Below are positions 27,306 through 56,110 of a stretch of 64,000 nt of DNA, piece by piece; positions within the stretch are counted from its first letter, which is position 1, and the number at the start of each line of letters is the position of its first letter. Under the pieces are notes generated by a model that saw nothing but the letters and a program-made list of their open reading frames with translations, ran no database searches and was not told the DNA's origin. Origin of the DNA: Octopus bimaculoides (taxonomy: Eukaryota). The stretch is taken from assembly GCF_001194135.2 (NCBI RefSeq), contig NC_068981.1, positions 182,195,697-182,259,696 on the forward strand. The letters are read 5' to 3'. Both the position numbers and the translations under genes were made by a program.

Positions 27306-27510
27306 TGTTTAATGTCCATTTCCCATGTTGGCATGAGTTGGACGATTTGACTGATGTCTGAAGAGCCAGTGGCTGCACCAGGCTCCAATCTGATCTGGCA
27401 ATGTTTCTACAGCTGGATTCCCTTCCTGACACCAACCACTCCAAGAGTGTAGTGGGTGCTTTTTACATGCCACTGGCACAGGGGCCAGTCAGGCATGCCT
27501 GGCATCGATC
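27257..27510 (-). mobile_element. RTE LINE 3' UTR fragment with long (ATC)n tail
   Basis: Reverse complement of the RTE terminus; (ATC)n at 27257-27306. Confidence 0.85.
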
Positions 27511-28178: not shown

Positions 28179-28356
28179 ATGTCAGCTCCACCACCACCTC
28201 CACCGCCATGTGCGCCCCCGCCTATGAAGTTGGGTTCCAAAAAACAAGCCAGTAATACTTCCAAGCCTGTTGATAGAAATGTTTTCCTCGGAGAGATTCA
28301 TAAAGGTACTAGACTCCGAAAAGCAGTTACCAATGACCGTAGTGCACCAGCAGTTG
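28179..28356 (+). CDS. WIPF: WIP/verprolin (WAS/WASL-interacting protein family) polyPro + WH2 exon (exon 28162-28356)
   Basis: MSAPPPPPPPPCAPPP...DRNVFLGEIHKGTRLRKAVTNDRSAPAV carries the WIP-family WH2 signature LKKxVTNDRSAP. Acceptor ttttaattacag|, donor G|GTGAGT (phase 1). The vertebrate paralogue cannot be assigned. Confidence 0.93.
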
Positions 28357-29299: not shown

Positions 29300-29650
29300 A
29301 TTATCACAGCCAACAACTGTGTTACCATCATACATACTCACACTCCCACAAACAACACAACTATCCATTACTTTTGTGTACTCTCATTCTTGCAGTCTAC
29401 ACAACTATATATTTTCATCATATGTTTTTGTATTATCCCAGCTAATAATGACTGTATTACATTATCATTACGAATATTTGCATAATACCAGCCAATACAA
29501 GTGTGTCACTGTCTTGTGTACTTACATTATTCCAGCCGACACAGCTGTGTATTATTTCAACTGGTACACATATTATCTCCCTCAACAAAATTATGTGTTA
29601 CTCTCATGTATCTGTACTCAAATAAAACAAGCTCGCACAACTGTGGTATG
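29300..29650. repeat. Highly degenerate tandem array, unit about 45-50 bp
   Basis: Motif cagccracacaactgtgt recurs at roughly 45-50 bp spacing about eight times. Confidence 0.55.
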
Positions 29651-29902
29651 CAAATTAAGTTGCTCCAACTCTCTGAAACTACCTGATTTGCCATGTATAT
29701 AAACTGATTGGCTATTTGTTTCTCTGGGATTGATTCAAGAAGCGTAGACACCTGATGAGAATCCGAAAAAGTTTCAAAATCATTTAAGGATATTCATCAT
29801 TTTTGCAATCTATGGAGAATTAGTTTAATTTGCCATGTTTTTATGTCTATTGTGTAGCTTATGTATATTATATCATATTTTGATGCCGTGTGGATTGATA
29901 TT

Positions 29903-32402: not shown

Positions 32403-32513
32403 GAAATAAAAAGGCTTCACCGGCTTCAAAATACAATACAATAGGTGTACATACACATCGACAACAACATCAAGTGAAGGATAACGCATTATGGAGAAGA
32501 GGAAGCCAAGATG
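32403..32513 (+). CDS. WIPF: WIP-like gene cassette exon 2 (111 nt, phase 1/1): GNKKASPASKYNTIGVHTHRQQHQVKDNALWRRGSQD
   Basis: Acceptor cttaaccttatttttttctatag|, open in the phase left by exon 1, donor GATG|GTAGTT. Confidence 0.75.
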
Positions 32514-32859
32514 GTAGTTGACTGCTACATTAGTCCTGCACTGTGCATGTCTGATTAATTTTTTTGCTTAGTTTTTCATAGTTACGTGATATCATTGATT
32601 GCCATATTGTGCATGTTTTTTGCTCTTCTAACCTGACAAATGCTTTGTTTTTTTTTTGTTTTTGACTTTTTAGTTTGTCTCTGAGATGTTGTTATTAGGG
32701 TTCTTCATTAAGTTATTATCGTTTTATCCCTAAATTCAAAAATAGTATTTTTAATGATATGAATAATATCAATGGTACTGCAATTCTGAAGATAATAATC
32801 TTTAATGATAACAATAATGATGATGGACTCTCCTAACATATAACATGAGCATTCAACTT

Positions 32860-33115
32860 TTGCTGAATGACCTGCGCAAAAGATTTGTTTATTGTGATCA
32901 AATGTTTGTGCCACACATTTGCTCACTCTTTCCATCAAATCAACGTTATTTGAAGAGGTGCACTGTATACCACTTGTTACGTGCTGAGATGTTTGCAGAA
33001 CAACATGAGATGAAGTGTTTTGCTCAAGAACACAATACGCCACCTGGTTTAGGAACTGAAATCATGATCGCTAGTTTGTGAGTGCAACACCCTAACCACC
33101 AGGCAATGTTTCCTC
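32860..33115 (-). mobile_element. tRNA-head SINE (A-related)
   Basis: Reverse complement reads gcctggtggttagggtgttgcactcac...ttgtgttcttgagcaaaacactt; related copy at 49020-49320. Confidence 0.7.
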
Positions 33116-33149
33116 ACATAATAATAATAGTAATAATAATAATAATAAT

Positions 33150-33545
33150 AATAATCTTTTCTACTCTAGGCACAAGGCCTGAAATTTTTTGGTTGGGGTG
33201 CAATCGATTAGACCGACTCCAGTACAAAACTGGTACTTAATTCATTGACCCCGAAAGGATGAAAGGCAAAGTCGACCTCAACGAAATTTGAACTCAGAAC
33301 ATAAAGACAGACGAAATACTGCTAAGCATTTAGACCAGTGTGCTAACATTTCTGTTAGCTCGCCCTTCACATAATAATAATAATGATTTCAAATTTTGGC
33401 ACAAGGCCAGCAACTTCAGGGGAGGGTATAAGTCAATTACATTGACCCCCAGTATTCAGCTGATTCTTATTTTATTGACCCCGAAAGGATGAAAGGCATA
33501 ATCGAGCTTGTCAGAATTTGAACTCAGAACCTAAGGTCAGACAAA
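33150..33545 (-). mobile_element. Two tandem SINE-C copies
   Basis: Two successive reverse-complement copies, each preceded on + by (AAT)n. Confidence 0.85.
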
Positions 33546-33684
33546 AGGTCACTATAACAGTAATTAATTAATGATAATCAGCTTTTTACACTGCTTGAAG
33601 TACAACGACTTGGAGCACTATTTATTGAAAGTAGAATGGTGAATAAGTGTAATTATGTAATTTTGGGGGATAACTAAATTTATT

Positions 33685-34043
33685 TAGGTGCAGGCTTGGC
33701 TGTGTGGTGGTTTGTTTCCAAACCACATGGTTTCAGTTTTTGTCCCACTTGGACAAGTGTCTTCTGCTATAGCTTTGGGCTGACCAAAGGTTTGGGAGTG
33801 GACTTGATTGACAGAAACTGAGAGAAGCCTGTCGTGTGTGTGTGTGTGTTTTCTCCCACCAGCACTTGACAATTAGTTTTGGTTTGTTTATGTTCCTGTA
33901 ACTTAGCAGTTCAGCAAAATAGACCAATAGAACTGGCACTACACTTAAAACAAATAAGTATTGGCGTTGATTTGTTTGACTAAGTCCTTCAAGGTGGTGC
34001 TCCAACATGGCTGCAGTCCAATGACTGAAACAAGTAAAAGATT
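33685..34043 (+). mobile_element. SINE-B1
   Basis: Head, GT hinge and tail ending gactgaaacaagtaaaaga. Confidence 0.85.
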
Positions 34044-34260
34044 AAATTTTTTTATCCAGTGTTCTCTTGGTTCCAGTACCCATCAGTGATGATGGTATAA
34101 AAGTAATAATTTAACTCTCTACATTCTGAGTTCAAATCCAGCCAAAGGATTTGAATTTAGATTGTAAAGAGCCAGAACGCATACCTCAAAACATTTTCCC
34201 CTGGCATTTTCATGATTCTGCCACCTCATCATCATGATAATAATTATTGTTAATAATTAT

Positions 34261-34476
34261 GCAGTGAACTGGCAGAATCATTAATACATCACACAAACTG
34301 CTTAATGACATTTCATCTGGCTCTTTATGTTCTGAGCTCAAATTCCTCTGAGGATGATTTTGTCCTTCATCCTTTCAGAGTTGATGAAATAATGTACAAG
34401 TTAAGCACAGGGATTGATGTAATTGACTAGCTCCCTGTCCCCAAAATTTCAGGCCTTGTGCATATAGTTGAAAGGA
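34261..34476 (+). mobile_element. SINE-C copy whose (ATT)n tail abuts the R4/Dong element
   Basis: gcagtgaactggcagaatca...aaatttcaggccttgtgc..gaaaggatt. Confidence 0.8.
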
Positions 34477-35234
34477 TTATTATTGTTATTATTATTATTA
34501 TTGTTATTATTATTATTATTATTATTATATGAAAACTCACAGTTTATTTTGCTGGATATGATGGAAAGTGTCAGCTGTCCACAGCCAGTTGACTAAGGTG
34601 ACACTTGTTTACTGGTCATGCTTCAAGAATCTTGTGAAGAATTCTTGTAGTACCAAGCAATGCTGATTTTTGTAGGTGTTCTATCTTTACATGTGTACCA
34701 GTCTTTTGGAGCCATTTTGGTAGTTGAATGCTGTTACTTCCAAGTGTGCCAATTACTATTGGTATCATGTCTACTCTTCTCATTGATCACAACCTTCATA
34801 TTTCCCACTTCAAATCATTGTAGTTGTTTATTTTTTCTTCTTCGGTCTTTTTGATCCTGTTGTCATTGGGACATGCTATGTCAATTACCATGCATGTTCT
34901 TTTTTATTCACCACAACAATGTCCAGTTTCCGATGTCTGCTCTGGTGATCACACTGAATCATTGCATCTCACAGGATTTTGCAATTCTCATTCTCGGTGA
35001 CTCCTTCTAGAGTTTTCTCATACCACGTTTTTGCTCTTTGTAGGCTATGATTTCCACAGATTCCCAATGGATCATTCTTGCCACATTGTCACGTCGTCTT
35101 TTGTATTCATGCTATGCCAATTTGAGGCTTTTGCTAATGATGTGCTGTACCATTCACATGCATTTGTTGCTATTGGTAGTGTTGTCTATTCTGCACTTCA
35201 CACAGTTGGTCCTTAATGCTTGTTCTTGAGCTGT
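34476..35234 (-). mobile_element. R4/Dong-clade non-LTR retrotransposon 3' fragment (RLE endonuclease), degenerate
   Basis: Minus strand with stops and frameshifts reads AQEQALRTN...EYKRRRDNVARMIHWE..WYEK...ENENCKIL*D..RKLDIVV...VIDIACPND..EEEKINNYNDL..IPIVIGTLG..LQKSALLGTTRIL; stop at 34616-34618; (TAA)n tail. Confidence 0.85.
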
Positions 35235-35236
35235 AC

Positions 35237-35480
35237 AGGTGAGCTGGCAGAATCATTAGCACACCAGGCAAGATGCTTTGTGGTATTTCACCCATTACTA
35301 TGTTCTGAGTTCAAATTCCGCCGAAGTTGACTTTGTATTTCACCCTTTTGGGGTCAATAAATTAAGTAGCAGTGAAACACTGGGGTCAGTGTAATCAACT
35401 AGTCCCCTCCCACAAAATTTCAAGCCTTGTGCCTTCAGTAGAAAGGATTTTTATTATTATTATTATTATTATTATTACAT
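35237..35480 (+). mobile_element. SINE-C copy with (ATT)n tail
   Basis: aggtgagctggcagaatcattagcac...gaaaggatttttattattat. Confidence 0.85.
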
Positions 35481-35811
35481 TTGTTTGTTTTTAATGTCTT
35501 TTACACCTATATAATTTAGCAATAAATTTTACATGATAAAGCAACATATACACAGGTGTATGAATAATTGTGTCCACAACAGTAGTATAGCTGTGACAGT
35601 GGTGGTGGGTCAGCCCCGGACATCACTTTTATGGAGGTGGCACTTTTGTGTCTGCTGTATAAGGTCGTATAGGTTGGGGTTGGGAGTGGGGTGCAAACTT
35701 AAGCACTCTCCCAGGAGGCACATTCTAGGTTTGCCACTGATCCCACCATCACATTTACTATGACATTAGTTGTTTTTTAGTTGTTTTCCTACGTTCTTTG
35801 AGTTCTTTACA

Positions 35812-36032
35812 TTAACCCTTTAGCATTCAGATTACTCTGTCAAATGTTATGCCTATTTATTTCAGTTAATCATACATTATCTCACAGCTTCAAGATTACA
35901 ATGATGTGATCGCTTATTTTTTTTAGAAAGACATTGTAAGGTAGGCATGAGAAGTCAGATCTGGTCAATTTGAACATGATACAGCTACAATATTTAGGCC
36001 AGACAAAGCCAATTTAAATGCTAAACGATTAA
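35812..36032. mobile_element. TTAA-flanked (piggyBac-type) MITE
   Basis: TTAA-ccctttagcatt ... aatgctaaacga-TTAA; opposite orientation to 12164 and 17405. Confidence 0.85.
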
Positions 36033-36204
36033 TTTTAATTGGAATAATTTTGTTTTACTAAATGGGTAGTTTTATGCAAGATCAGTTACTATTTCACTTG
36101 TATATTTTCTCAGTATAATAACAAGTATATTAATGTATATTATGCAAACAATAAAATACATATTAGTAAGATCAGTTTCGTTCAGCTCTCTAACTTCACT
36201 AATA

Positions 36205-36309
36205 TTACTAATAGCTACTTTTATAAGCAGTTTTCATTTATTACTAATAGCTACTTTTATAAGCAGTTTTCATTTATTACTAATAGCTACTTTTATAAAC
36301 GGTTTTCAT
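36205..36309. repeat. 36-bp tandem repeat, about 2.9 copies
   Basis: Unit ttactaatagctacttttataagcagttttcattta starts at 36205, 36241 and 36277. Confidence 0.95.
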
Positions 36310-37418
36310 AAAATTTTACTATAAGCAACTCAAAATGGAAATGCTTCAATAACGATAGACATTTTAATAGAACTTTCATGTTAACATTTTTTTCTTCTAT
36401 CTTGCTAAATTGAAAGCAGCTTCAATAACAACAAGTACACCGAATTGAATTTGCCATCTGCTAATGAGCTTCTTATATCATTAACACTTGCTGCTCTAGT
36501 TAGTTTGCTCTTGTTGACTAAACTAAGTTGCTGCAGACAACAGAGATAATTAATTTTATTCTTTATTGTTCCAGCATTGATTTATCAACTTTGTATTTCA
36601 AATGATCATAATTGGTAAAAATTTTAATGAATGGGAAAAAACAGTTTCTCATTCTTTTGTCACTTTACTTTATTTCCGTGTGCATTTGTTAGTAATCTTC
36701 ACAAACAGCTAAAAAGAATTTTTCCCCCTTTCGTTTTTTAAAATATTAGTTCCAAGTTAAATATGTGTATATTTGCACTTTTTTTTTTTTTGCACTTGTA
36801 TTGTATATATTTCCTTGAAATGCTAAAATGAATTTTTTGTCTGTGTGTGTGTATGTATACACTTGTAGTTATTCTTTCTGTTTTTATAAATTTTGTAAGG
36901 AAAATATTTTAATAGAATATTTATGTTTTTACATATAATCTTTTACAGCTGAAACTACTTTTATGAAATGATTTAAATTAGTTTTGTAATAAAATACTTA
37001 TGTATCTCTAATTCAGTAGACATAGCTTGTGTATATGCCTGCATGCTCATGTGCATGTATGTGTACACAATGTAGTCTTATTTTTATTTTTAATATCTTT
37101 TATGGTAATGCAGTTTCTAAAATACTTTGCCTAAGTCATTTTCTTCAGAAAGCATTAAATTCTAATGAACATAATTTTTTTACTGTATATTCTCTATTAT
37201 GCATTTACAGTGTATTTTCTAAACTATATTTCTTATCTAATATTTAAAATGTGTATTTTGATACTGAAACCTGGTGTGATCTTTGTATAGTACTTGTTTT
37301 GAGATTTTATTTTTCTTTCTACCACCAAAACAAATTAATTTTGTTATGAAATATCCATTTAATGCTAACATAATATATATATGTATACACTTTGAAATTT
37401 CTGTTTTTCACTTTGCAG

Positions 37419-37760
37419 ACTGTTCAGCTATATTAATTCAAAGGAAGAAAATCCTTGAGAAAAAACAAAAAAATGTGATATCCAATCACAAAATAAACCC
37501 AATCAATAATAATGCTAAGTCAAGTTATTCACTTACAGCTGCCACCAAGAACACTGGTCTCCAAAATAATTTGCCTGTTTTATCAAAAACTCTTCCAGCT
37601 AATATTTCTCATAGCAATGATCTTAGTCATGGTCTTAACTACAATCAAACTAACAGTGATTCTGTAAACAATAATGAGTTTAACAAACCAATAGACTGGT
37701 ATATAAAACGGGGCCTTAATGAGTCTAACACACGTTGGATTTCAAATCTGAAGAAAAAGG
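37419..37760 (+). CDS. WIPF: WIP-like gene cassette exon 3 (342 nt, phase 1/1), N/S/K-rich
   Basis: Acceptor ctgtttttcactttgcag|, 114 open codons (DCSAILIQ...RWISNLKKK), donor AAGG|GTATAA. Confidence 0.75.
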
Positions 37761-37964
37761 GTATAATTATTATTGTTGTTTATAGCTTAGTTAACCCTTG
37801 CCTTTTGCCTATTCAGTGAGTCTTTTGTCAGCCTTGCACTAAAATGGTTTTTATCCTCTTCACCTGTTTTAAATTAAAACCTTTTTTTTTTTTTGTTTCT
37901 TTCTAGCTTTTCCCTATATATTGTTGGTATTTTCCCTAGTGCAAGTTACAGTTATTTTATAGAC

Positions 37965-38420
37965 ACTGGTGTGGCTGTATGATAAGAAGTTTGCTTCCCA
38001 ACCACACGGTTTCCGGTTCAGTCCCACTGCATAGCTACTCAGGAAAGTGTCTGCTATTATAGCTCGAGGTTAACCAAATCCTTGAGAGGATTTGGTAGAC
38101 AGAAACTGAAAGAAACCTGACAAATGTGTATGTGTATGTATGAAAGTATGTATGTATGTGTATAAATGTGTGTGAGTGTTACTGTTCTCTTGTCTTGATA
38201 TTGTATGACAGTTGTAAATGAGTTTCACTGTCATATAAGCGGCACCTTTCATTTCCAAGTTTCCATGAAAACAGTCTTATAGTGGGGAAATATTACCTTA
38301 CTTGGAAATAAATGAGGGTTGGCAAGAGGAAGAGCACTTGGTTGTAGAAAATCTGCTTCAACAGATTTTGCCCAACCCATGTAAGCAGGGATAAGTGGAT
38401 GTTAAAATGAGGATAACAAG
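37965..38420 (+). mobile_element. SINE-B2
   Basis: B head, microsatellite and RTE-type tail. Confidence 0.75.
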
Positions 38421-38790
38421 GATTTTTTAGCTCTGGGCTTTTCATTTTTTTTTTTTTTTACATTAAGCTGTTTTCTGTGGTTTCTTTCAATCTGTTTGTT
38501 TCATGAATATCATGGAACTTATATAATTATCATGGATGTCAGGAAAAAATATAGAAAATTATGCAGGTCCCTCTTAGACGAATAATTTTAGAATACACAG
38601 GTCTGGCTGTGTGGCTAAAAAGCTTGCTTTCCAATTATGTAGTTTGGGATTGAGGTACACTGAACAGCACTTCAGGCAAGTGCCTTCTTTGATAACATAG
38701 GGCCAACCAATGCTCTGTGAGTGGATTTGGTAGGCAGAAAAGGAAAGAAACCTATTGTATATATATGTATGTATATATGTGTGTGTATAT

Positions 38791-39897
38791 ATCATCATCA
38801 TCGTTGTTTAATGTCTGCTTTCCATGCTGGCATGGGTTGGACAGTTTGACTGAGGGCTGGCAAGCCAGAAGGCTGTACCAGGCTCCAATCCGATCTGGCA
38901 AAGTTTCTACAGTTGGATGCCCTTCCTAATGCCAACCACTCCAGAAGTGTAGTAGTGGGTGCTTTTTACATGCCACCAGCACAAGAGCCAGTCAGGCGGT
39001 ACTGGCATTGATCACACTTGAATGGTGCTTTTCACATGCCACTGGCATGGAAGCCAGTCAGGCGGTACTGGCAATGACCACGCTCAAATAATGCTTTTTA
39101 CGTGCCAATCAAGCAGTATTGTCATCAGCCACAACGATTTTGCTTGCCTCAACAGGTCTTTGCAAGCACAGTTTATTGCCCAATGATTGAAGGGTACTCT
39201 TAAATGGGCCTGTTATGCTGCACTGGCATAGGCCACACTTATGGTCTCACTTGGCTTGCCAGGTCTTCTCAAGCACAGCATATCTCCAAAGGTCTCAGTC
39301 ACTTGTCATCGCCTCAGTGAGGCCTAAAGTTCGAAGGTCATGTTTCACCACCTCATTCCAGGTCTTCATGGGTCTACCTCTTCCACAGGTTCCCTCTACT
39401 GTTAGGGTGTGACACTTTTTCACACAGTTGTCCTCATCCATACGCAACACATGACCATACCTGCGCGGTTGTCTCTCTTGCACACCACATCTGATGCTTT
39501 TCTCTCAGGGCGCTTACACTCTTTCATGTATGCACACTGACATTACAGATCCAGCAGAGCATACTGGCTTCATTCCTTGCAAGCTCACGCATATCCTCAG
39601 CAGTGCCATGTTTCATTGCGATGTAGCATGGCTGTTTGCACACATGTCATACAGTCTACCTTTTACTCTGAGCGAGAGGCTCTTTGTCGCCAGCAGAGGT
39701 AGGAGCTCTCTGAACTTTGCCCAGGCTATTCTTATTCTAGCAGTTACACTTTCAGAGCATCCACCGCCGCTACTGACTTGGTCAGCTAGGTAACAGAAGG
39801 TATCAACTACTTGTAGTTTTCCTCCTTGGAATGTGGCGGAAGCTGTTTTCTGCACATTTTCAGTGTTTATTGCCCCTGAGCATTTTCCACACACATA
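38791..39897 (-). mobile_element. RTE-clade LINE, 5'-truncated, frameshifted
   Basis: CGKCSG..VDTFCYL.D..S.GGG.SESVTARIRIAWAKFRELLP and YGHVLRM...GRGRPMKTW are typical RTE C-terminal motifs; 3' UTR and (GAT)n tail at 38791. Confidence 0.92.
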
Positions 39898-39959
39898 TAT
39901 ATAGTGTGCTATGCCTGAGAGGACCCATTAAGTCAAGTGCACCCATGCTGGTGACACGT

Positions 39960-40345
39960 AGAGAATACTTTCTGAGCATTGGGCCTCACAGAGGCAAAGT
40001 GGCTGAGTTCTTTGTGATTGTTGGGCCTCACAGAGGCAATGACAAAGACCACTGGCATTTTGTTGTGTTTGAGAAGAAATCCCATCAACCAAGCAAAATC
40101 GCAGATACCGGTGTCATGCAAATTGCCACATAAACACACCCCAATATCATGCAAATGGCATCCGTGCCGGTGGCACGTAAAAGCACCCATTATACTCTGA
40201 GTGGTTGGCATTAGGAAGGGCATCCAGCCATAGAAAACCATGCCAAATCAGACTGCAGTCTGGTGCAGCCCTCGAGCGTGCCAGTTTGGTCAAACCATCC
40301 AACCCATGCCAGCATGGACAACAGACGTTAAATGATGATGATGAT
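39960..40345 (+). mobile_element. Second RTE 3' fragment, different 3' UTR variant
   Basis: LGLTEAMTK ORF end, then a different UTR and the shared terminus with (GAT)n tail. Confidence 0.8.
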
Positions 40346-40773
40346 AACATCTCACTTTTCATGTAGTCACTAATGATCATATAGAACCAATTGTGTCACT
40401 TAATCTTTCCATCTGGGCCACAAGCATTTGAGATTTCCCAGATTTCTGCTCTGCAAAAGTAGAAACAAATTCAGGAAACTTGTTAGATATATTGTTTTCT
40501 CTATCAGTTTTTTACAGCTCGAGTTACAAGTTCATTGGGATCGTCTCTCAAGTGGACATGTATGTTTTGAGTGTGGATAAGTTTAACATACAAAGGATAG
40601 CATTTAGATAGCCCTCATTTTGTAATTAAGTAGATATAAGAGCAAGTACTTTGAGTGTTTACGTTCCTTAGTACTGAAGTCAATGTGACACAAGTTTACA
40701 AATTAAGTTTTTATACCCCAGCACATTTTTAGATACTAGCATTCCTCTTCCTGATCATCTCCTCACTCTTACA

Positions 40774-40815
<42 letters not shown>

Positions 40816-41226
40816 GTAGTAATAATAACAGTTGTATAAATATCAAATCTTGTTCACTGTGTGAATCAGATAATAATAGAGATAATTATGTAATTAGTAC
40901 TATTTGTTCTAATGGCAATTCTCCCCATGTTCCTTTTACTTTATCATTTCTAAATAAGAAGCATTTTCTTGTAAGAAGTCTAATTTCTTAGAGAAATTAT
41001 TATTGTTGTCTTTTGAATCTTTTCTTTACTCATTTAATTTACTATATTCATTTTCTTTTGTAATTAAAAGTAAATCATTTATTTTGCATTTGTTTTAATT
41101 ATAGAAATATCTAACATAATTAACATATTTGTTTTCAACCCAGATTAGTTTTATTTTCTTAACTAATTAATGTCTTTTTCTTTTATTTTCTGAACTGCCT
41201 ATAACTTAACAATTTACCAATTTCAG

Positions 41227-41910
41227 TTCGTCGGCTATCGGCGTTTTCCTTTCCTGTGATGACATCTTCCAAGTCCAGCTTTGAAATCTCACCAAATATA
41301 CAATATTCTTCTCAAACATCTTCAGTGCCTCAGCATTCTCCTAACCAATTTGTAGCCCACTTAAAAACAACAAAAGCAGAATCATCATCATCATCGTCTC
41401 ATTATGCATCACCAGTGTCTCATCAGAATAAGAGCTCTGTTATTATTAACAAAACTGAAAAGACTCAGCAGATGGAATCAGAAATTATCACTACTCCATC
41501 TTCTAGAACTAATCAAGATACCTCTAATGATATAAGTAATACTAGCTTTACTAGCTCTGATAATTATCTGTCTCCCTATCAGTATTCTAAACCATATTCT
41601 TCTCAGAGTGTTGAGAATAATGTCAATGTTCCCTCAACAGTACCAGTACCACCATTGATTGAGCAGATCCAATCCAATTTCAAAAAGCTAAAACATAGTT
41701 CTCCTAAAATGGCCAAAGCTAGGACTAGCAGTGGAAATAAATCCAACTTGAAAATTATTCAAGGTTCTCCTTACCATACATCATCGAAAGCTGCCAAAAC
41801 ACTAGAACAGCAGCTTCATTCTCTGCGCAAGACCTCAATCAACCGTAAGACTACATCTTTCGAACCTTCGGCACCAGTATCAGAATGGAGACAGAAGTTG
41901 AAAGTGGATG
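41227..41910 (+). CDS. WIPF: WIP-like gene cassette exon 4 (684 nt, phase 1/1), S/T-rich with WH2-like motifs
   Basis: Acceptor ttaccaatttcag|, 228 open codons (VRRLSAFSFP...EWRQKLKVD), donor GATG|GTATAC. Confidence 0.8.
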
Positions 41911-42074
41911 GTATACAATGCACAGTTATTAGTTTTAGAGTTTTGTTGTTGGCACTTTGCATAAGCATATAATTAATTATAGAATTTCCCATCTTCTTGA
42001 ACACTCACACAAACATGTTACTGCCTTGCAAAAATACTATTCAGTAAGAACTAGCTAACTTTTCATAGCTGTGT

Positions 42075-42122
<48 letters not shown>

Positions 42123-43730
42123 NNNNNNNNNNNNNNNNNNNNNNNNNNNNNNNNGACAGTAACTTCAAAGTCACTATCAACAATATCCTTGCTTAAGAAT
42201 AATAAACTCTACAAAAGTATAGAGTAACCTCTGAGATTAATGTAAAATTGTTTTTATTATAAGTGAACATAAAAACAAACTATTTTGGGCATGGCTACAT
42301 GTCTGAAGCTGGTGTCATGAGAAATGCTTCCAGTACACTAGGTAAAGTGGATGGTGCTAAGAAGGACATCTAGCCATAGAAACCAAGCCAAAAAGGAAAC
42401 CTGAGTGAGAGGAGGTCTTCCAACCCTCTAGGCAAGCAGTACTCCTTAGTATATGCTGACTCAGACCATGTGATCCATCTACCCCATGCTAGCCTGAAAA
42501 GCAGACATGATATGGTGACATATATGTATATAAATATATATATTATATAATAATCAGCTGCATGAAAACAAACAGCAAAGTTGGTGCTAATGTACCCAGC
42601 GTAGTGAGTCAATTAATTTTAATTAGTTAGAAATTTCTTTGCTCACTACATTATATATGTATGTATTGGTGCCTTCTTTACTATTTTTGTTATTTCTGTT
42701 GACTAAGAAAAGGCTTTTTGATCAGACTTCTGGTAAATTTTATGCTATGAACTGATTGGTGTATGTTTTTCTTTCAAATGCCTTTAAAATAATTTATCCA
42801 TATGAATATGAATATTTTCCTGTGTCACTCTCTGTGTGATCTACAATGTGTTGGTTTATAAACCTCAAGAGACATCATTGATAAATCTCAAGTGTGTTGG
42901 ATTGGCAGAATCGGACAAAATGCCTTTGTGCTGTTTAGTTACATACAACTCTTAATGTTGCCAGTCCAAATCTTGCTGAGATCAACTTTGCCTTTCTATC
43001 AAGGTGAATTAATTAAAATACCAATTGTGTACTGGCGTTAATAGTATTGACTAAACCCATCCCCTCATAATTGCTGTCCTTTTGCCTTCAGTAGAAATAA
43101 TTATTTATATGCTTAAAAAACCTTGTGAACAATGTGTTCATAATGCTAACCAACAAGATTCATGTTTACCCTTTTAATTTCAGTATCAGTTTATCTTAAT
43201 TAGAAATAATTTAAGCTACAAGTAATAAAGATTTTAATATTATTTTATTTTAAGGATAGTGGGTGACTAAAACAAAAGAGAGAGAGAGAATGATGGATTA
43301 AATATTTTGTAGTATTTAGTTACGCAGTTTTATATTTGAGTTCAAATCTTTCCTAAGCCTTTTCACCCTCCTAGGGTTAAAATAATATTTACCAGTAGAT
43401 ACTGTTGTCAGTTTAGTCATTTCTACCTTCTACCAAAATCTGTGACACTGAGCTTGTCAGAAATCAACATAAATTTATTATTGATGTTTTTTTAATTAGT
43501 ATGTGTATATAATTTTTTTACTTGATACATCATTATAGAAACTTTGGAAGCTGTATAGACTTTCAAAGTGTGACTGATTTCTTTGGCTGTGTTAGTGGAC
43601 GCTAACACATGCCCACAATATTGACATGTCAACATTGCAGCAAAAAATTTAATGCCAGCTTTAAAGACTTAATAACTACAGATTCCCATAAAGTTTTACA
43701 CTAAGAAATTGTTCAACCTATTAACTGTAT

Positions 43731-43978
43731 CAGTGGTTCTCAATCATTTTTTGCCTATAGACCCCTTTCACTTTACTGAACCTCCATCACCATTCAATAT
43801 GTATTAAAAAAATCCTTCTGTATTTTTATAATTAAATGTTATTATGAACTACATAAAAAAAAGTAAAACATTTTGTATACTGTAGAAGTGTAACCAACTT
43901 ATTGCTCATAAATTCTAACAACAAAAAAAATCTTATATGGACTCCCAAGGGTCATATAGACCCAATTGAGAACTATTG
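43731..43978. mobile_element. hAT-type MITE
   Basis: TIRs cagtggttctcaa / ttgagaactattg (Charlie-like); 8-bp TSD not preserved; ends 119 bp before the exon 5 start. Confidence 0.65.
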
Positions 43979-44096
43979 TGGGCTTTTTTTTTTTGAAACA
44001 GTAGTAATTTAAAGCTTATAGAATTGAGAATTTGTTTTTATAATCTACCTCTCTGTTCTCTTTTTAATTATAATTTGAATAATTTAAAATTTTCAG

Positions 44097-44903
44097 CTCC
44101 CAGTTTCCATAGATTTTCTGCTTCTCGTTTGAATATTCGCCAGCCTGGAACTCCCCGGCATCGATCTGCAGCTATGTCTCATTTTAGACCAGTAGCTACA
44201 ACAAACACTCCGAACTCTTACAATTTGACTAAACCTTCTTCAGATATCGTTGCAACTAACTCCACTAATGTTTTAACTGTTGCTGCTAAATTTTCTAACT
44301 TTGACCAACAGCAAGCATATCCAAAAGAGACTAAAAAAGAATGTATCATCTATGAAAAACCTCAACTGCCCTCCCAAAAGTATAAAAGTCCAGTAACTAG
44401 TATTTATGAATCTGCAGCTATTTTTGAACAACCCCAAAATTCAGCATACAAACTACCTAAACAGTTTTCACAACCATCAACAGTATCACAAACAACTTCT
44501 GAGGAAAAACCAGCAGAATTTCTGGAAGTTACTCTGAAATCAACAAAGTTTTCGACTTTATTTTATGGTGCTAAAAAAGATCCCAAAAAGGATTTCACAC
44601 CGTTTGGAAATTACAACCGATCACCTTACGGGAACCCGTCTTTATTTAAGAGTAATAATAATAATCTAAACCCTTATGTAAGATCTGTTTCCTACCACGG
44701 GCCACTTTCAGAAGCTTCCTACTCAAAGTCTCCACAAAACTCAGGCAGTTATTTCCGACCAATTGGTTGTTCATTCTTCCAGCCTTCATTTATGTCCAAT
44801 TCTGAGAGAGGATATTCTGAAAATACCTATCAAATGTCAGCTTCAGCACCATCACTGGTTCAAAATCGTATCAAATGGGCACTGAACATGTCTTCATCTG
44901 ATG
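44097..44903 (+). CDS. WIPF: WIP-like gene cassette exon 5 (807 nt, phase 1/1), S/P/N-rich
   Basis: Acceptor tttaaaattttcag|, 269 open codons (APSFHRFS...VQNRIKWALNMSSSD), donor GATG|GTATTG. Confidence 0.8.
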
Positions 44904-45289
44904 GTATTGTTCCTGTTGTATTCCTTCTCCTTATGCACATAGTTTCCTTCTGCTATACAGCTCATTTCTACCCACTGTTTTGCATACAATCTCAAGGTTT
45001 AGTGGCAAAGCTTCAAACTCTGGCACCAAAAGAGAAAAAAAAAACACAAAAAAGATCACATAAACAAACCCAAGGTTGAATTCATGTTTTCACTCATAAA
45101 AAGTAATTTATAATTAATTATATCATTATTGAGGTTGATAACAACGTTGGAGTATCATTATTAAAAGCACACCAAATAAAAATTGAGGTTATTTAATTGC
45201 ATTCTTTTCTAATCTGAGCAAAAATCATGTTTAAATCAACTTACCCTTGAGTTGATTAAATAATTACTTATAACATAGTAAAATACTCG

Positions 45290-45880
45290 GACTTGGCAGA
45301 ATTGCTAGCATGCTGGGAAAAATGCTTAGTGGCACTTCATTAATTCTTTTATTCTTTTACTTTTGTTTCAGTCATTTGACTGCGGCCATGCTGGGGCACC
45401 GCGTTTTAGTTGAGCAAATCGACTCCAGGACTTATTCTTTGTAAGCCCAGTACTTATTCTATCGGTCTCTTTTGCCGAACCACTAAGTTACTGGGATGTA
45501 AGCACACTAGCATCAGTTGTCAAGCGATGTTGGGAGACAAATACAGACACACAGGCACACACACATATATTCGACGGGCTTCTTTCAGTTTCCGTCTGCC
45601 AAATCCACTCACAAGGCTTTGGGCGGCCCAAGGCTATAGTAGAAGACACTTGCTCAAGGAACTAATGGAACTGGAACCATGTGGTTGGTAAGCAAGCTAC
45701 TTACCACACAACCACTCCTGCACCTATATTTAAATATAGTTTAAATTTTTATATGATTGACTTTACCTTTCATCCTTTTGAAGTCAATAAAAATAAGTCC
45801 TAGTTAAGTACTGGGGGTTGATGCAGCTGACTTTCTTCCCCCAAAATTGCTGGCCTTGTGCCAAAATTTGAAACCAGCAT
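45290..45880 (+). mobile_element. SINE-C interrupted by a SINE-B1 insertion
   Basis: C head at 45290-45340; C 3' half resumes at about 45755. Confidence 0.75.
45344..45726 (-). mobile_element. SINE-B1, full length, apparently young
   Basis: Many CpGs retained; colinear with 20150-20546. Confidence 0.9.
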
Positions 45881-46429
45881 ATTAGAAGTTGAGTTGATTG
45901 TACCACCAACCCTAAATTGTATGGCCTTATGTCAATGTTAAATTTATTATTGACGCTAATAAATAGTTCGTTATTTGAACTTTGAGACTCAGGATGATTT
46001 TTTTTTAATGGTAATGAAAAAGAGGTCTCCAGTCAGTGTTGAGTTTCTGAAATTTTCTATAAATCTTATAAAACTCTTTTTAATCAAAGTGGTGTTAATC
46101 AAATACTACTTTTGTTGAGCTCAACAATTCTTGGTTCATTAAGTACTACGTGATTATTAAACTAATTAGGTGCCAAAAATAAACCTTCTATTAGTTTCCC
46201 TATTGCTGGTGAGACCATAAAAATATCTTGTACTTCATTTGAAAACACAGAGAGGCAGCAATATAATTAGTTAAATAACAATGTAATTGAGTTGCAAACT
46301 TGGCTAACATCATGTTCATAAACAGACATATATATTTGTTAATTTGACCGGTATGTAAAATTTAGAAAGTTCCATCCTCTTGAATATTGGCCTTTCAATA
46401 TATCTTCTTACTAATAGTTACTGTGGTGT

Positions 46430-46855
46430 CATCATCATCACCATCGTTATTATTTTAACATCCACTTTTCCACGCTTACATGAGTCAGGTGGAATTTGTT
46501 GAGGCAGATTTTCTATGATTGTATGCCTTTCCTAGCATAAATCCTTATATGTTTCCAAGCAAAATAATATTTCCCCACAGCCAGACATGTTTTCACAGAA
46601 GATTGAAAACAAAAGACACCTCCTGTGGCACTAATTTACTTATGTCCTGCAATGTCAAGATAAGGAGATGCAAACACACTAATACATATACAACAGGCTT
46701 CTTTCAGTTTCTGTCTACCAAATCCACTCACAAGGTTTTGATCAACCCAGGACTAAGAAGACACTTACTACCCATGGTGCCACACAATAGGACTGAACCT
46801 GCAACCATACTGTTGGGAAACAAAGTCCTTAACCACTCATCCATGTCTGCTCCTC
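46430..46855 (-). mobile_element. SINE-B2 (diverged)
   Basis: Reverse complement of B head plus RTE-type tail. Confidence 0.7.
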
Positions 46856-46974
46856 ATAGCCATAGAGTAAAAACGATTATATTCTTGAAGTGTAAACAAG
46901 GAAAGGAAGTAGGTATGTTGACATTTTACTGGCTAATGAGCATGAGGCAGACAAGGACATATGTACTTTAAAAA

Positions 46975-47283
46975 ATATTTCTGGTTGTATGGTAAGAACA
47001 GCATGGTTCAGAGTTCAGTCCCACTGTGTGGGACCTTGTGCAATTATCTTCTACTTTAGCCTAGAAGCAACTAAAGCATTGTGAGTGGATTTGGTTGACT
47101 GAAACTGAAAGAAGCCCATTGTGTGTGTGTGTGTGTTTGTGTTTGTGTCTGTGTGTACGTCCCCCGTAACCTAGCAGTTCAGTAAAAGAGACCAATAAAA
47201 TTAGTACCAGGGTTTAAAAAAATAAAGGTGGTGCTCCAGTGTGGCCACTGTCTAATTACTGAAACTAAGTAAAAGATAAAAGG
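46975..47283 (+). mobile_element. SINE-B1 (internally deleted)
   Basis: Head, GT hinge, tail ending gaaactaagtaaaagataaa. Confidence 0.75.
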
Positions 47284-49019
47284 CATCGAAGTAAAATGTG
47301 GCTTATGCATTGGTGTCATTTTCCAAGCTGCTTAGTTTTAGGAATGTAAACAAACCAACACTGGCTGTCAAGTGGGGAAGGGAATAGCAAGCAAGACACA
47401 CACACACACACGTGTGTGTGTGAGTATATCTATCTATCTATCTATATATATATATATATATATATATAGATTCAAGGTGAATAAGGTGATTAAAGTCAAA
47501 ATAAGCAACAAGAATATCCAAAGATATTGCGGTACGATCGTTTCATGCAACTCCATTTATTTAAGCAATGTAAACATTACATCAAATATAAAATGCAGAG
47601 CAATCCTCAGCTGCACAAAGATATAGAAATTTACTGAAATTTCATTTCAACAGAAGGACATATTTGTTTCAGTCATTCGACTGTGGCCATACTGGAGCAC
47701 CACCTTTATTAATATATATGTGTGTGTGTGTGTGTGCAATGGAATTCCATACAGTTTCTGTCTACCACTCACAAGGCATTGGTCAGTCTAAGGCTATAGT
47801 AGAAAGTACTTGCTCATGATGCTGCACTGTGGAACTGAACTAAAAACCACATAGTTGCAAAGTAAGCTTCTTAACCACATAGCCATGCCTATTGATAAAA
47901 TATCTGTAATGCTGCTATGGTAACTCTCTCTCTAGATATCAGAGATATTGTGTAATAATTAACACGTCCTCCTCTCAGAGGTAATAGCAGACTTAGTGGT
48001 TATGACTGAATCATAACCATGCTTTGGGCTTCACTTGCTGTCACTCTACAATTATTGATTGGTCCTGTTTAATATTACTGGCTGTCTCAACTGATTGATA
48101 AGTGTAACTGTTAGTCTGTGTCTTTCTGTATACAGTGAGGTAAAATGAACTGGCAAGAGTTAAGTGCTCTTGCATGAGTGATGTTTAAGTGCTAATGACA
48201 CACTATGAGCCATCAATTGCTTGTGCCCATTTGACTTCTTCATTTGCTTCTCTCACTTTAATTGATACACAAGAACAACCAATTGTATTAGATTTGTGAT
48301 TCACCGCTGATAGTTTATCTGATTAGTTCTAAGCCAAAATTAATCGACATGTTTAACCAGCCAATTGCCAATTGATTAAAAAAACATTAGTTGGGGAATG
48401 AGAATATAAAAATAAAGTAGTTAAGTAAAGATATCTGAAAATTATGTTTATATCAAGTAGTTTGTTGGTGGTCACTAAGGAGCAAGGAATAAATTCCCAC
48501 CTTGCTTCTCCTAGGACATAGTTTCAATTCCATGTAGAAGCTAATTTATTCATGTGTGTGTAATAGACAATAAGCAAAATAAGAGATGACAAGAGTGGGA
48601 CAAGTTTTAACAAATGTATTCATTTGACATTTAAAAGGAAGAGAAAGAATCTCGATGTTTCAGACATTAATCCATCTTTAAAAAATATAAAAAGAGCAGG
48701 AAATATGTGTGTTCGTGTGTGCATATGTTTTGATCCACATGTATTTTCATTGACACTATTTAGCTAGTAGTGATGACGTTTAATTCCAACATAAGTAAGC
48801 AAAAATATGTCACCTTAACTGTTCATGTGAAGTTGTGGAATAGTTGGCTTCATTTGTAAAAATAAGTTAGGGTCAATATTAGAAAGAGCTTCTAATCATA
48901 AAATGCTGCCTCTACAAGTCTTGTCTAACTTAAACCAACATGGAAAAATTAGACATAAAAACGATGGTGATGACTGATTGTTAGATAACAAGAGTGAAGA
49001 GGGAAAAACCTACATACAT

Positions 49020-49320
49020 GATCACGTGATTGACCAGACTATTGAATGTTGTACATTGCTGGTCACAATGCACTTTGCATTGTTTTAGCTTTCAAATAAT
49101 GCCTCCTCACTGGCTAGGTGAGCAGGCCAATATTCCTTCTGATCAGGTGACTAATCTATCACAGGGTTACTCATTTACATCTTACATCTGAGTAGATTGG
49201 TGTGTTGTGAAATTATGTGTTTTGCTCAAGAACACAATATGCCACCTGGTTCAGGAATCAAACCCACAATCCAGCAATCATGAGTGCAATGCTCTAACCA
49301 CTAGGCCATGTGCCTTTATT
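49020..49320 (-). mobile_element. tRNA-head SINE (A-related)
   Basis: Reverse complement ggcacatggcctagtggttagagcattgcactcatg...; head shared with 32860-33115. Confidence 0.7.
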
Positions 49321-51081
49321 CATATGTAAATAACAATCAGATTCAATAATAGTAGTATTAGTGAGCTACAATGTAGACAAAATTGAATTCAACTTATTAA
49401 CTTCATTAATTTAACAAAATTAATCAAACAATACCCACTGTCCAAACTCTTATTGCCATGTAGTGTTAGATTTACTAGATTTAGTAAATTCACTTCAGTG
49501 TTTTCTAAATTCTCTGATGAAATGTGTTGCCATATTTGACTGGAATCTAACACTTCCCTTTCACTTCTTTGCAGACCCCCTGTTTCAGGGAAAACACTGT
49601 TGTATAGATCAATGGAAATATTTTTGATTTACTTATGCACTTTAGACCTCTTTATTTGATTCTGATTTCTCTGTTTTATAATAACTTTTTATTGTTAGTG
49701 ATGTGTGAGTATTAATTACTGATAAAATGATTTTAATTAAAAAATTTTTTTTTTTTTAAACTTACATTGTTTTGTCTGTAATTTTCGTATTTATATCTGG
49801 TAATTAATATTAAATGACATATTTCTGGTATTTGAAGTATTGTATTTAGTGAAAGATATCTCTGTCCTTCAGAACTGTTTTGATTTTAAATTGTCTTATC
49901 GATTTTTGTTTTATTTATTTATTTCTAATTTCTTAATCATTAGTATTGTTATTTGTACTCTAAATAATTTTTTTAATTGAAAATTCTTTTTATAGCAAAA
50001 ATGTACATTATTTATAATTATATTTTACTTCTTGTCATGAAATAGTATATAAAGTTACCTCCCTTGTGACAGATTTGCTTCCCTTTTAAACTGTCAGCCA
50101 TGTTACCATTCCACTTTTGTAAATGGATCATTCCAAAATACAAAATATATACAGCTTGTAGTATCTGAAATTCAGAAATGATTTGTGTTTAATATTTACA
50201 GCCACTTACTATACCACAAAATAATGCAGACTGAGGAAATGGTATAAAGTGCCGTGAGCTAAACTGTATAAATTATCGTATCTAGATCAATGATAATTTT
50301 CTGAGTTCTCCACAAGACTTCTTCAGGTTTCATTGCCAAATACACACCTCCAATTATTTCTAATGCCTAATAGAATAGGAATTATTAATTGGTGCCTTGT
50401 AGTGGGCAATACTGTATGATAGTAATTATTTTGGCTGGGAATAAAGTTTGCGATCTCATTTATAATCTCTAAATAGAAACATTCTTTTATGTCTCCAAAT
50501 TGGATGAGGCATGAATGTTACAAATTTCCCTTTCTGTATCAAGCTAAAGTTTGTTTTGTTTTTGTTTTTTTTAATATATTTCTATTTAATTGTTGCCTGA
50601 AGTCAATCGCTCCATCTGCAAACAGAGAGGTTGTGACTTGCAGGGAATCGATATGGTTAATTTTAGTTTTAAGATGTTGGAGATTATTTTGTTGAGAAAT
50701 AGTTATTGGTTTGAAATACTATGCGTAAACGTTTGACGTTGCATGTAATGAAAAAGGGGACAAGAAACAGTCTTGATGATCTGAGTGTTTTAAGAAGCAG
50801 AAGAGGAAGCAAATATTTGAGCGTAATGACACATTAAAGATTGGTTTTCAATGATGTTGGTGTGGAGCTAGTCAAATATGATTTCTGAATATGTAATATT
50901 TTGCCTTCTAACTTTGACTTTCTTCTACAATTTTATCTTTGATTTTAATATTTACATGACAATATTTTATATTTTAAGATATGTTTTGACTCACTGTACA
51001 TGGCGTTTTCTATAAAATATAGATTTTCTTCTAAATTTTCTTTTTCCCTATCAGTATCTTTGGACCATTTCTTCATTGCAG

Positions 51082-51171
51082 CTAATCAAAGTACAGATAC
51101 AAAAGATGATACAGTCCGATCTTTGGTCAAAGACCGTATCAACTCTTGGGGAGGACATTATAAAGATGAGG
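51082..51171 (+). CDS. WIPF: WIP-like gene cassette exon 6 (90 nt, phase 1/1): ANQSTDTKDDTVRSLVKDRINSWGGHYKDE
   Basis: Acceptor catttcttcattgcag|, donor GAGG|GTATAA; ends in a motif similar to the end of exon 5. Confidence 0.75.
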
Positions 51172-51984
51172 GTATAACTGACTTTATCTTCTAAAGTTTC
51201 GATGTATTGGTAGCAATGGTCACAACAGTTAGTTAGTTGCACCTGCATGTATATGTTCAGTCAAATATGTTTGTCACTGAATATTGCCATAGTTTTCTCC
51301 CACAATTTAGTTCTACAGCCTTTTAAGTTAATTATGTAATCACCTGCTTATTAATGAGGTTTCTTTCCTGAACATCTCACATATATATATACTATAGCAC
51401 TTAAAAAACCTTGGCTCAGTATTTAGTATAGAACTAAATATTCTAAATAACTACTGCTTAAATGAAATACTTAATGGAAAACTATTAATAAATGTAATCG
51501 ATATTATTCAGTGTTAAATGACCTGAAGATGAGTTGCCAATATTGTATGTTAGTGTACTGCACAATATCAGATATTTGAGAAAATAACTAGAAACCTATA
51601 TATCTTACAAATTGTTCTGGGTGAAAGTTAGTTATTTAAAAGTTAATACTGTGATAGTTAAGTTCAATAGAAATTGTTAGTCATTACTTTAGATTTCTAA
51701 AAAGTACTCATAGGATTGTAATGAATATATGTAAATGTAACTTAATCAGAACTTGTTAATATTATTTAAAATGTTTCAACAAAAAAGTAAATGAACACTG
51801 TAGAAAAACAGTGTGGCTATAGAAAAGAAGTGTGCCTAACGATGTTAAATTTTGATTAGAAAATTTTAGGCATTTGAAAATTATAACTAAAAAAAATTTT
51901 TTTTATCAGTTTATAATATTTAAGTCTAAATCTTTTCTTCAATTAGTCATGAATTATTAGTCACGAATTATTCAATTTATAGAT

Positions 51985-52016
<32 letters not shown>

Positions 52017-52157
52017 CTTCAGATTTTCTCTTTCATAATACCTTAAACAACACACATTAACATAAGAAATAATAGCTATTTTTCTATTTTATAAACAGTT
52101 TATGAAATTCCACCAACTTAGAATCCTTATAAAAATACTAACAAATTTTTCTGGCTA

Positions 52158-52188
<31 letters not shown>

Positions 52189-54220
52189 AGGTGCATTATA
52201 GAAGTCAAGGCATGACAGGGATCTGGTGATAGTAAAAGATTACAGAAAACAAGCACAATATCAGGGAAGCTATTTTTATGCCTAATTCCTGTCCTGTTCC
52301 CCTTTTCTGTTGTCATGATTTTTTTTTGTTCACTTTCATTTCTTGTCTTATACCATTGATGTATACACTGTTTTATTTTTATTTGCTTTATCATAGTAAT
52401 GATATTGAGCATCATTTAGTTATATACACCATATTTACTTGTGTATAAGTTGCACTATTTTACACTTGATTTTAACTGGAAAAACTGCAGCAGCTTACAC
52501 ACAAGTCTGACTTATGCACATGTAAATATGCTGTGTTTATATATATATATATATCTATCTATATATATATATATATTTAATTTTTTCCTTTATTTTGCTG
52601 CTGTGATATATTTCTTTTTTTCTCCCTATTTTAGTAATTAATTTTATTTCGTTATTTTTCAGTAATTTGCATGATCATATATGAATTCTAATAATGTTGA
52701 TTCTTATCTTCATTGTATGTCCAGAAAAGAAAAAAAAAATGCATTTTCATTCAGTTTTGATATACATACGTACGTGTGTGTGTGTGTTGTGAATTATTGT
52801 TAAGTGGTGAACTATTGTTTTACTGAGAGAATGAACTATAATCTAGTCAAAAAGTAATTTGTGACTTTGTTTCAATTTTCAGTGTTTTTTTTTTTTTAAT
52901 ACCTATTCAGAATTGCAAGACTACTGTAGCATCTTTATTCTTCTATATATACAAAGAGAAATCACATCATCATTATCATTTCCAACATCATTATTTCAGC
53001 TATCATACTTTTTTTTTTTATTACTGCATAATTGTGTTTCTATGTAAGCCTTGGATTCACTCAGTCTTCTTTTTATCTTCATCTATTGAAAATACTCTGT
53101 GCAACATGTGGGGAGTGTCTTTTACATCAGTGTTATTTTCTCTCCATACATTGTGTCAACATTACCACCATCATCATCATCATCTGTGTATGATTGTGAA
53201 TATGCTGTATCATTTGTCCCCAATTGTTTTTTTTTTTCCCGTGTTATTGATCAATAATTGAGTCATTATGATTTGAGAAATCATTAAGCAGGCATTGGTT
53301 ACCTTTATGTAACATCTATCAGATATGTTAAACTATTGACTGTGCGTTAAACTGTTGACTTAGTTCTGTATTTAGCAGATTAACTGGATCACATATTGAT
53401 GTTACTACTTAATGTGATTTACTATTACCTGAAGATTAATTTAGTGTATTCATAAACTGCTTTCAGTTGACAGAAAGATAGTTAGCTACATAGGTATCCA
53501 GATACATAGATAAATAACAACTAAGAATTGTATCTATACTAATTTCATTCAATGTTTTGATGTATGTTCGGTCATTTTCCAGAAAGTTGTTGCTGACAAG
53601 GGATCAGGATTCTCCTGTGTTTGTTATTGTTTGGCCCCAGGTCAATAGCAGCCAAGTAAACCTATGATAAAAAGGCTCACATAGGGGCTCCCTTGTTGGG
53701 ATGTGTCCTTAGTTTGTTGTGTATAGATATTTCCAACAGAACTAATTGTTTCTGATATTAGTTCACATATGGCTGTGTAGTTAAGAAGCTTAAGCTTGAA
53801 GTTCAGTCCTACTGCATTCCCCTTTGAGTAAATGTTTCCTACTATAATTTGAGTCAACCAACACTTGATAAGTGTTTCTAATAAACAGAAACTATATAAA
53901 ATATATACAGATGGTGAACACTCTGTAGGATGAAAAACAAAACCTGTCGAAGGATGAACTCAGTAGAGTCCATGGCTGTTCAACATCTGGGTGTGAGAGA
54001 CCCCCTAGTCTTCATTTAAACATCTTTCTAGATGAAGGAAAATTCAGGTGTAAAACCTGTGGTTTTGTTTGCATCCAATGGTGTAGATTAGTTCTTCTTT
54101 TTGGGGAAATGCACACATTGTTCACAAAGTGGGGGTTGGTCCTGTGCAAAACCTTTCCTCACTTTAAAAAGCTTCAGGCATAGGCATCCTTTGATTGTTA
54201 ACATATCTAGTAACCTCCCT

Positions 54221-54480
54221 GAAGGCACATGGCTCAGTGGTTAGAACATCACTCACAATCATGAGGTAGTGAGTTCGATTCCTGGACCAGGCTGTGTGTT
54301 GTGTTCTTGAGCAAGTCACTTTATTTCACATTACTCCAGTTAACTCAGCTGTAGAAATGAGTTGCAACAACACTGGTGCCAAGCTGTATCAGCCTTTGCC
54401 TTTCCCTTGGATAACATCAGTGATATGGGTGACTACTGGTTTTCCATAAACAACTTTGCCCAGACTTGTGCTTTGGAGTT
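54221..54480 (+). mobile_element. tRNA-head SINE (A-related)
   Basis: A-box tggctcagtggtt, B-box gagttcgattcc, CORE-like gttcttgagcaagtcactt. Confidence 0.8.

Positions 54481-56046: not shown

Positions 56047-56110
<64 letters not shown>

Follow-up and report, generated by a model that had tools for sequence, protein, structure and literature searches.

A series of symmetric phase-1 coding exons downstream of a WIP-like WH2 exon in Octopus bimaculoides

A stretch of 64,000 nucleotides (nt) of the Octopus bimaculoides genome (contig NC_068981.1, positions 182,195,697 to 182,259,696 of the forward strand; hereafter the window) carries five exons of symmetric phase downstream of an exon encoding a WH2 motif of the WIP type. 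The five exons, numbered 1 to 5 from 5' to 3', are genuine coding sequence that is mostly absent from the annotation. We consider it fairly probable that they belong to a single gene of the coleoid cephalopods, in which a long disordered region follows the WIP-type WH2 and is made of phase-1 symmetric exons, each consisting of a spacer and a terminal tryptophan (Trp) motif. The original prediction, made from the letters of the window, had described the exons as a lineage-specific generator of isoforms inserted in a WIP/verprolin gene. That description stands as far as the exons are concerned: they are real and coding, the UniProt model A0A0L8H5D3 links the WH2 exon to exon 1, and exons 2 to 5 continue the same phase series. 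The WIP label and the lineage specificity hold only in part.

Anatomy of the exon series

The first coding exon of the gene, the WH2 exon (28179..28356), runs on the forward strand from an ATG at 28179 to a phase-1 donor, GTGAGT, directly after 28356. On the same strand it is followed by exon 1 (32403..32513, 111 nt, donor GTAGTT), the product of which ends in …DNALWRRGSQD; exon 2 (37419..37760, 342 nt, donor GTATAA), ending in …NTRWISNLKKK; exon 3 (41227..41910, 684 nt, donor GTATAC), with VRRLSAFSFP at its start and …SAPVSEWRQKLKVD at its end; exon 4 (44097..44903, 807 nt, donor GTATTG); and exon 5 (51082..51171, 90 nt, donor GTATAA), which encodes …TVRSLVKDRINSWGGHYKDE. The introns that separate the six exons are 4.0, 4.9, 3.5, 2.2 and 6.2 kb long. 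Each of the five downstream exons is preceded by a pyrimidine-rich tract and AG and followed by GT, has a length that is a multiple of three, is in phase 1 at both ends, and is free of stops when read in the frame that the WH2 exon sets; each occurs once in the window. Since every exon ends in G, a junction codon is never a stop, and all 32 combinations of the five exons are open, with products of 59 to 737 amino acids (aa). The coordinates, the phases and the open combinations were all claimed in the original prediction and are confirmed here. Six successive introns of phase 1 would be unlikely if the phases were independent.

The frame stays open at the donor of exon 5, and a search for additional exons was negative both in 51172-64000 and by comparison with 6.4 kb of sequence downstream of the exon-5 homologue in a decapodiform contig. 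The gene therefore continues beyond the end of the window at 64000. The same downstream part of the window contains two copies of a 256-nt sequence (57657-57912 and 58121-58376), 100% identical to each other and placed on either side of a run of N (57913-58120); this duplicate is almost certainly an artefact of gap closure or scaffolding rather than biology.

Another assembly gap, of 32 N, is located within the series itself (42123..42154). It lies in the intron that joins exon 3 to exon 4, 213 nt past the donor of the former and 1,942 nt before the acceptor of the latter, and immediately follows a (CT)n(TA)n microsatellite. As the gap is intronic, it interrupts no reading frame. Exons 3 and 4 are placed in order by scaffolding across the gap, the alignment with contig L014 of a related octopus ending at window position 42098, just short of it, and the gap could conceal a small exon.

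The two longest exons are beyond what chance would produce. Of the five exons, only 3 and 4 lie in open stretches (255 and 360 codons) that exceed the maximum reached in 30 composition-matched Markov simulations, where the longest open run was 145 codons on average and 207 codons at its peak. In the 35.6 kb between 28357 and 64000, chance provides 922 stop-free AG..GT intervals of phase 1-1 and at least 60 nt, 453 of which measure 60-119 nt, and therefore exons 1, 2 and 5 need support from outside. The length of exon 1 taken alone is not above chance; its GC content is 0.39, against 0.25 in the flanks, and its one outside support is A0A0L8H5D3, which joins it to the WH2 exon. Other chance candidates of phase 1-1, such as 29173-29694 and 49193-49309, were not adopted, as their translations are hydrophobic or cysteine-rich and unsupported.

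Selection and conservation among cephalopods

Contigs of a related octopus (Logan assemblies, runs SRR118693xx) allowed exons 2, 3 and 4 to be compared with L018, L014 and L011, respectively. Exon 2 shows 91.5% nucleotide identity and no indels, against 43 and 17 gap columns in its two flanking introns; exons 3 and 4 show 90.7% and 91.3% identity, and the indels in each are two of 3 nt. The flanking introns are 82.5-92.0% identical (mostly 83-88%), with 2-131 gap columns each. For all three exons the acceptor AG and the donor GTAT are kept in the related species. The ratio of non-synonymous to synonymous substitution rates (dN/dS) across cephalopods, put forward with the original prediction as a way to check it, was computed in this comparison and lies at 0.22-0.31 in the proposed frame and at 0.9-3.3 otherwise: 0.22 for exon 2 (3.3 and 1.1 out of frame), 0.31 for exon 3 (0.88 and 1.38) and 0.23 for exon 4 (0.89 and 1.45). 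These alignments show purifying selection on exons 2 to 4, and only in the proposed frame. The 3' flank of contig L011 matches additional dispersed repeats.

Exons 4 and 5 can be followed beyond the octopuses. A 248-aa open reading frame (P0005) found on the genomic contigs L001-L010 is 39% identical to exon 4, and one of these contigs derives from run ERR12945500, which according to the cuttlefish genome paper (bioRxiv 10.1101/2025.04.22.649952) consists of short reads of Acanthosepion esculentum. The exon-4 homologue of A. esculentum (L001) is 810 nt long and of phase 1-1, with an unchanged acceptor position and G|GTATCC as its donor. An exon-4 homologue of 813 nt with the same acceptor, donor and phase is present on a decapodiform-like contig (L020; ENA ERZ21867824), in which a 111-nt exon of phase 1-1 (8156-8266, encoding …TVRSLVRDRINSWGNNLKDD / …ETVRSLVRDRINSWGNNLKDD) is located 3.7 kb further downstream and is homologous to exon 5 of the octopus (tblastn, E=5e-9). 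As homologues of the same phase occur in decapodiform contigs, exons 4 and 5 predate the octopus-cuttlefish split and are at least coleoid-wide. On L020, no homologue of exon 3 was found in the 3.7 kb that precede the exon-4 homologue, and the 6.4 kb that follow the exon-5 homologue show no other conservation, nor does window 51172-64000.

Within exon 4, four blocks are invariant across the coleoids, with spacers between them that diverge freely. The blocks read RLN(I/V)RQPGTPRHRSAAMSH; EVTLK.TKFS…YG.KKD..K.(F/L)TPF; SYFRP.GCSFF.PSF; and SASAPSLVQ.RI.WALNMS.

An exhaustive search of 1.84 billion representatives yielded no homologues outside the cephalopods, and a scan of the JGI metagenomes added none. 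The term "lineage-specific" in the original prediction is thus apt in that this search met with no relative outside the cephalopods, and too narrow in that exons 4 and 5, with decapodiform homologues of the same phases, are not specific to octopus.

The gene calls deposited for the L020 contig (ctg105078l, which is AT-rich and eukaryotic) read TGA as Trp. One of them, P0014, does not end at the in-frame TGA that closely follows the exon-4 donor, and such "proteins" thus extend into introns.

The WH2 exon and the region behind it

The product of the WH2 exon consists of a polyproline stretch and a long WH2 motif, MSAPPPPPPPCAPPP…RNVFLGEIHKGTRLRKAVTNDRSAPAVG. The Pfam WH2 family (PF02205) is recognised in it with E=1.7e-7 and 31.1 bits, above the gathering score (cut-off 23.1). 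In a phmmer comparison with PDB sequences the top structure was the WH2 of WIP bound to actin (2A41_C, E=2.3e-5), with the segment 'vtndrsap' included in the alignment, and the WH2 motifs of MIM and N-WASP came next. An exhaustive phmmer search retrieved UniRef100_A0A0L8H5D3, a 98-aa "WH2 domain-containing protein, Octopus bimaculoides". Its start codon is the ATG at 28179 and its residues 1-59 equal the translation of 28179-28356; the next 37 residues comprise 36 identical to exon 1, followed by the Gly with which the model begins to read two codons past the donor (…QDGS*). Window positions 28162-28178, from the acceptor of the WH2 exon (…acag|ag|TTGCTC…) to the ATG, contain no in-frame stop. 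Because of this open stretch a further coding exon could be present upstream of the WH2 exon.

The arrangement of an N-terminal polyproline followed by a long LKK(T/V)-type WH2 with a trailing …NDRSAP segment is shared with the WIP/verprolin family (WIPF1-3, yeast Vrp1, Drosophila Vrp1/Sltr), where the WH2 likewise contains …L(K/R)K.VTNDRSAP. Human WIP continues with a glycine-rich stretch between two WH2 motifs, a central proline-rich domain of 320 residues and a C-terminal WASP-binding domain (PMC7407642). In the octopus gene, by contrast, the next 677 aa are rich in Ser, Asn, Lys and Thr. At only 2.5% Gly and 6.6% Pro they are unlike the Gly/Pro-rich WIP sequence (PMC7407642), and the glycine-rich stretch after the first WH2 is missing, as the original prediction had pointed out for the vertebrate proteins. 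No second WH2 was recognised by Pfam at E<=1 in the 737-aa model, the exon 4 block 'EVTLKSTKF' included. No proline-rich open frame was found in 51172-64000, and the window contains no WASP-binding domain; the 3' part of the gene, and with it the C-terminus, lies beyond 64000 and could still encode a proline-rich domain. The label "WIP/verprolin gene" is therefore borne out by the long WIP-like WH2 (Pfam, 2A41_C) and not by the second WH2, the proline-rich core or the WASP-binding domain, which are absent from the window. Since the WIP/verprolin call comes only from the WH2 exon, the defensible label is "WH2-domain protein with a WIP-like WH2".

Other proteins also combine a WIP-like …TNDRSAP WH2 with a long sequence rich in Ser, Thr and Lys, among them P0001 and proteins with the WH2 of MIM/MTSS1. 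Their similarity to the octopus gene is restricted to the WH2, the number and position of the WH2 motifs differ, and there is no evidence of orthology with either type. P0001, an open reading frame with four WH2 motifs, was rejected as an orthologue, as it originates from a filarial-nematode run (SRR10898805) and matches in the WH2 only.

The 677-aa insert contains 16.5% Ser, 9.2% Asn, 9.0% Lys and 7.1% Thr, carries a net charge of about +41, and matches no Pfam family and no PDB sequence. AlphaFold2, applied to exons 4 and 5 together with their homologues, returned no fold (mean predicted local distance difference test score, pLDDT, 44). The helices in the model are one of four residues (151-154) and the exon-terminal Trp motifs at 254-263 and 279-289; the latter two, LVQNRIKWAL and VRSLVKDRINS, are weakly predicted and concern the two exons that were modelled. 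The insert as a whole is predicted to be intrinsically disordered.

Six Trp residues are present in the insert, and in exons 1 to 5 one of them precedes the 3' end by 7, 8, 8, 9 and 8 residues, respectively (about 32493, 37737, 41887, 44876 and 51148, forward strand). A permutation that keeps the Trp count of each exon gives P=4e-5 for this regularity, or 4e-4 for exons 2-4 alone, for a pattern that was spotted post hoc. In the decapodiform homologues of exons 4 and 5 (exon ends on L001 and L020) the Trp is found at -8. Pairwise similarity among the five exons is not significant, except that exons 2 and 3 match in low-complexity sequence. Exons 3 and 4 open with sequences that resemble basophilic phosphorylation sites or 14-3-3 sites, namely RRLSAF (VRRLSAFSF) at 41227-41260 and HRFSAS … RHRSAA (FHRFSASRLNIRQPGTPRHRSAAMSH) at 44097-44200, both on the forward strand; in exon 4 this block hardly differs between the octopus and the decapodiform contigs.

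Genes for disordered proteins tend toward symmetric, often tandemly duplicated exons, and alternative symmetric exons are the most disordered (Schad, Kalmar and Tompa 2013, PMC3632108). The octopus series resembles this class in its run of symmetric exons (phase 1-1 throughout), its predicted disorder (pLDDT 44) and its short invariant blocks between variable spacers. It should be kept in mind that the class is a statistical one, described for the human genome, and not a homologous family, and that the octopus exons share no significant similarity beyond the position of the motif.

Exon joining, exon use and significance

In the reading that we favour, the protein would start with a WIP-type polyproline and a long WH2 that binds the actin monomer, and would continue as a long, basic, Ser/Asn/Lys/Thr-rich disordered region. 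This region may have been built through exon duplication or accretion, because the run of phase-1 introns is unbroken and the Trp position is regular. The protein probably tethers the WH2-bound actin monomer to partners that would read the conserved short motifs and the basophilic sites (RRLS, RHRS). By default the exons are taken to be mostly constitutive, or regulated only in part.

Several observations weigh against this reading. Exons 2 to 5 are linked with one another and with the WH2 exon by their phase and not by any transcript, and the sole annotated model, A0A0L8H5D3, ends after exon 1. What supports exons 1 to 3 comes from Octopus only. An origin by duplication relies on a Trp pattern noticed post hoc, in exons that show no significant pairwise similarity, and the functions proposed for the motifs are what we infer from their sequence.

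According to the original prediction, the five exons would be independently regulated cassettes, the combinatorial inclusion of which, in up to 32 forms, would tune linker length and motif valency behind the WH2 in a tissue-specific manner; we regard this as unlikely. It agrees with the openness of all 32 combinations, in which the junction codons always begin with G, with the existence of one annotated model that lacks exons 2 to 5, and with the organisation of each exon as a self-contained module closing in a Trp motif. Moreover, the donors of exons 2 to 5, four out of the five, depart from the consensus as GTAT(A/T)N sites without G at +5, where the WH2 exon has GTGAGT, and the GTAT donors are kept in the related octopus and decapodiform contigs. 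On the other hand, the strength of GTAT donors comes without an octopus baseline, the symmetry is automatic once all introns are in phase 1, and constitutive use would account just as well for exons 4 and 5 being strongly conserved. No skipping junction was seen, which is uninformative in a contig collection with no O. bimaculoides open reading frame for exon 4, nor for exon 3 under the start codons ATG and TTG, and full 32-way independence is rare in any gene. A proximal rise in intron conservation, a marker of alternative exons, is not consistently observed either, with identities of 0.46-0.98 in 50-nt bins of the flanking introns. The frame-preserving lengths and the symmetric phase found here are necessary for cassette exons and not sufficient. 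Exons that encode disordered regions are known to be symmetric in phase (PMC3632108), and this does not mean that they are skipped; alternative use of the exons is plausible, because symmetric exons are typical of genes for disordered proteins (PMC3632108), without being demonstrated. U12-type introns, considered on account of the GTATCC donor in the decapodiform contigs, were dropped, as the donors and branch regions in octopus do not seem to fit the consensus; no formal test was applied.

It is quite unlikely that the locus comprises two transcription units, with the WH2 exon and exon 1 forming a short gene that corresponds to the 98-aa model, and exons 2 to 5 belonging to a separate downstream gene, the first exon of which has escaped recognition. 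Such an arrangement would explain why A0A0L8H5D3 ends two codons into the intron after exon 1, why the join of exons 1 and 2 is found in no model or contig, and why the decapodiform contigs carry exons 4 and 5 with no WH2 exon in view. However, the decapodiform locus reaches just 3.7 kb upstream of the exon-4 homologue, and the 98-aa model reads through a good donor, as is typical of a truncated prediction. The phase-1 start of exon 2 needs an upstream donor of phase 1, which is exactly what the WH2 exon and exon 1 supply, and no alternative exon bearing an ATG is evident in 32514-37418.

A more specific form of the cassette proposal appears very unlikely to us. Here, each phase-1 exon would add one Trp-helix motif, and tissue-specific subsets of exons would set the number of such motifs behind the WIP-type WH2 of a coleoid-specific actin regulator. 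If true, the inclusion of subsets would act as a combinatorial tuner of valency for the binding of actin or its partners, for instance in muscle, suckers and neurons. Finally, there is hardly any likelihood that some of the short exons (exon 1 and, formerly, exon 5) are unused chance AG…GT open intervals: such intervals are abundant in the region and exon 1 has no support from other species, but exon 5 has a significant decapodiform homologue of the same phase, and exon 1 is part of an independent gene model, has an exon-like GC content and carries Trp at -7.

An interspersed element some 300 nt long occurs in at least seven copies, with 74-88% identity, on both strands of the window, the introns of the gene included (16401-16900, 22350-22634, 27289-27510, 38791-39107, 40156-40345, 7343-7692 and 3150-3228, recognised by similarity). 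The element fits the expansion of short interspersed nuclear elements reported for octopuses. An open frame on the reverse strand of the intron between exons 2 and 3 (39616-39927, ending in …FCYLADQVSSGGGCSESVTARIRIAWAKFRELLPLL) resembles the C-terminal region of the reverse transcriptase of a retrotransposon without long terminal repeats; this is unconfirmed, the transposon-like open frames of the introns having no Pfam hits.

Symmetric exon runs are already known from genes for disordered proteins, and on present evidence the octopus series is an ordinary disordered region of symmetric exons and not a proven generator of 32 isoforms. If the single-gene reading is correct, the public 98-aa model is badly truncated, as exons 2 to 5, some 640 aa or more of coding sequence under selection, are missing from it, and the gene would be related to the actin regulators of the WH2/verprolin type and confined to cephalopods. 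Its conserved disordered region, with invariant motifs that are as yet unexplained, would then be a candidate for lineage-specific regulation of the cytoskeleton.

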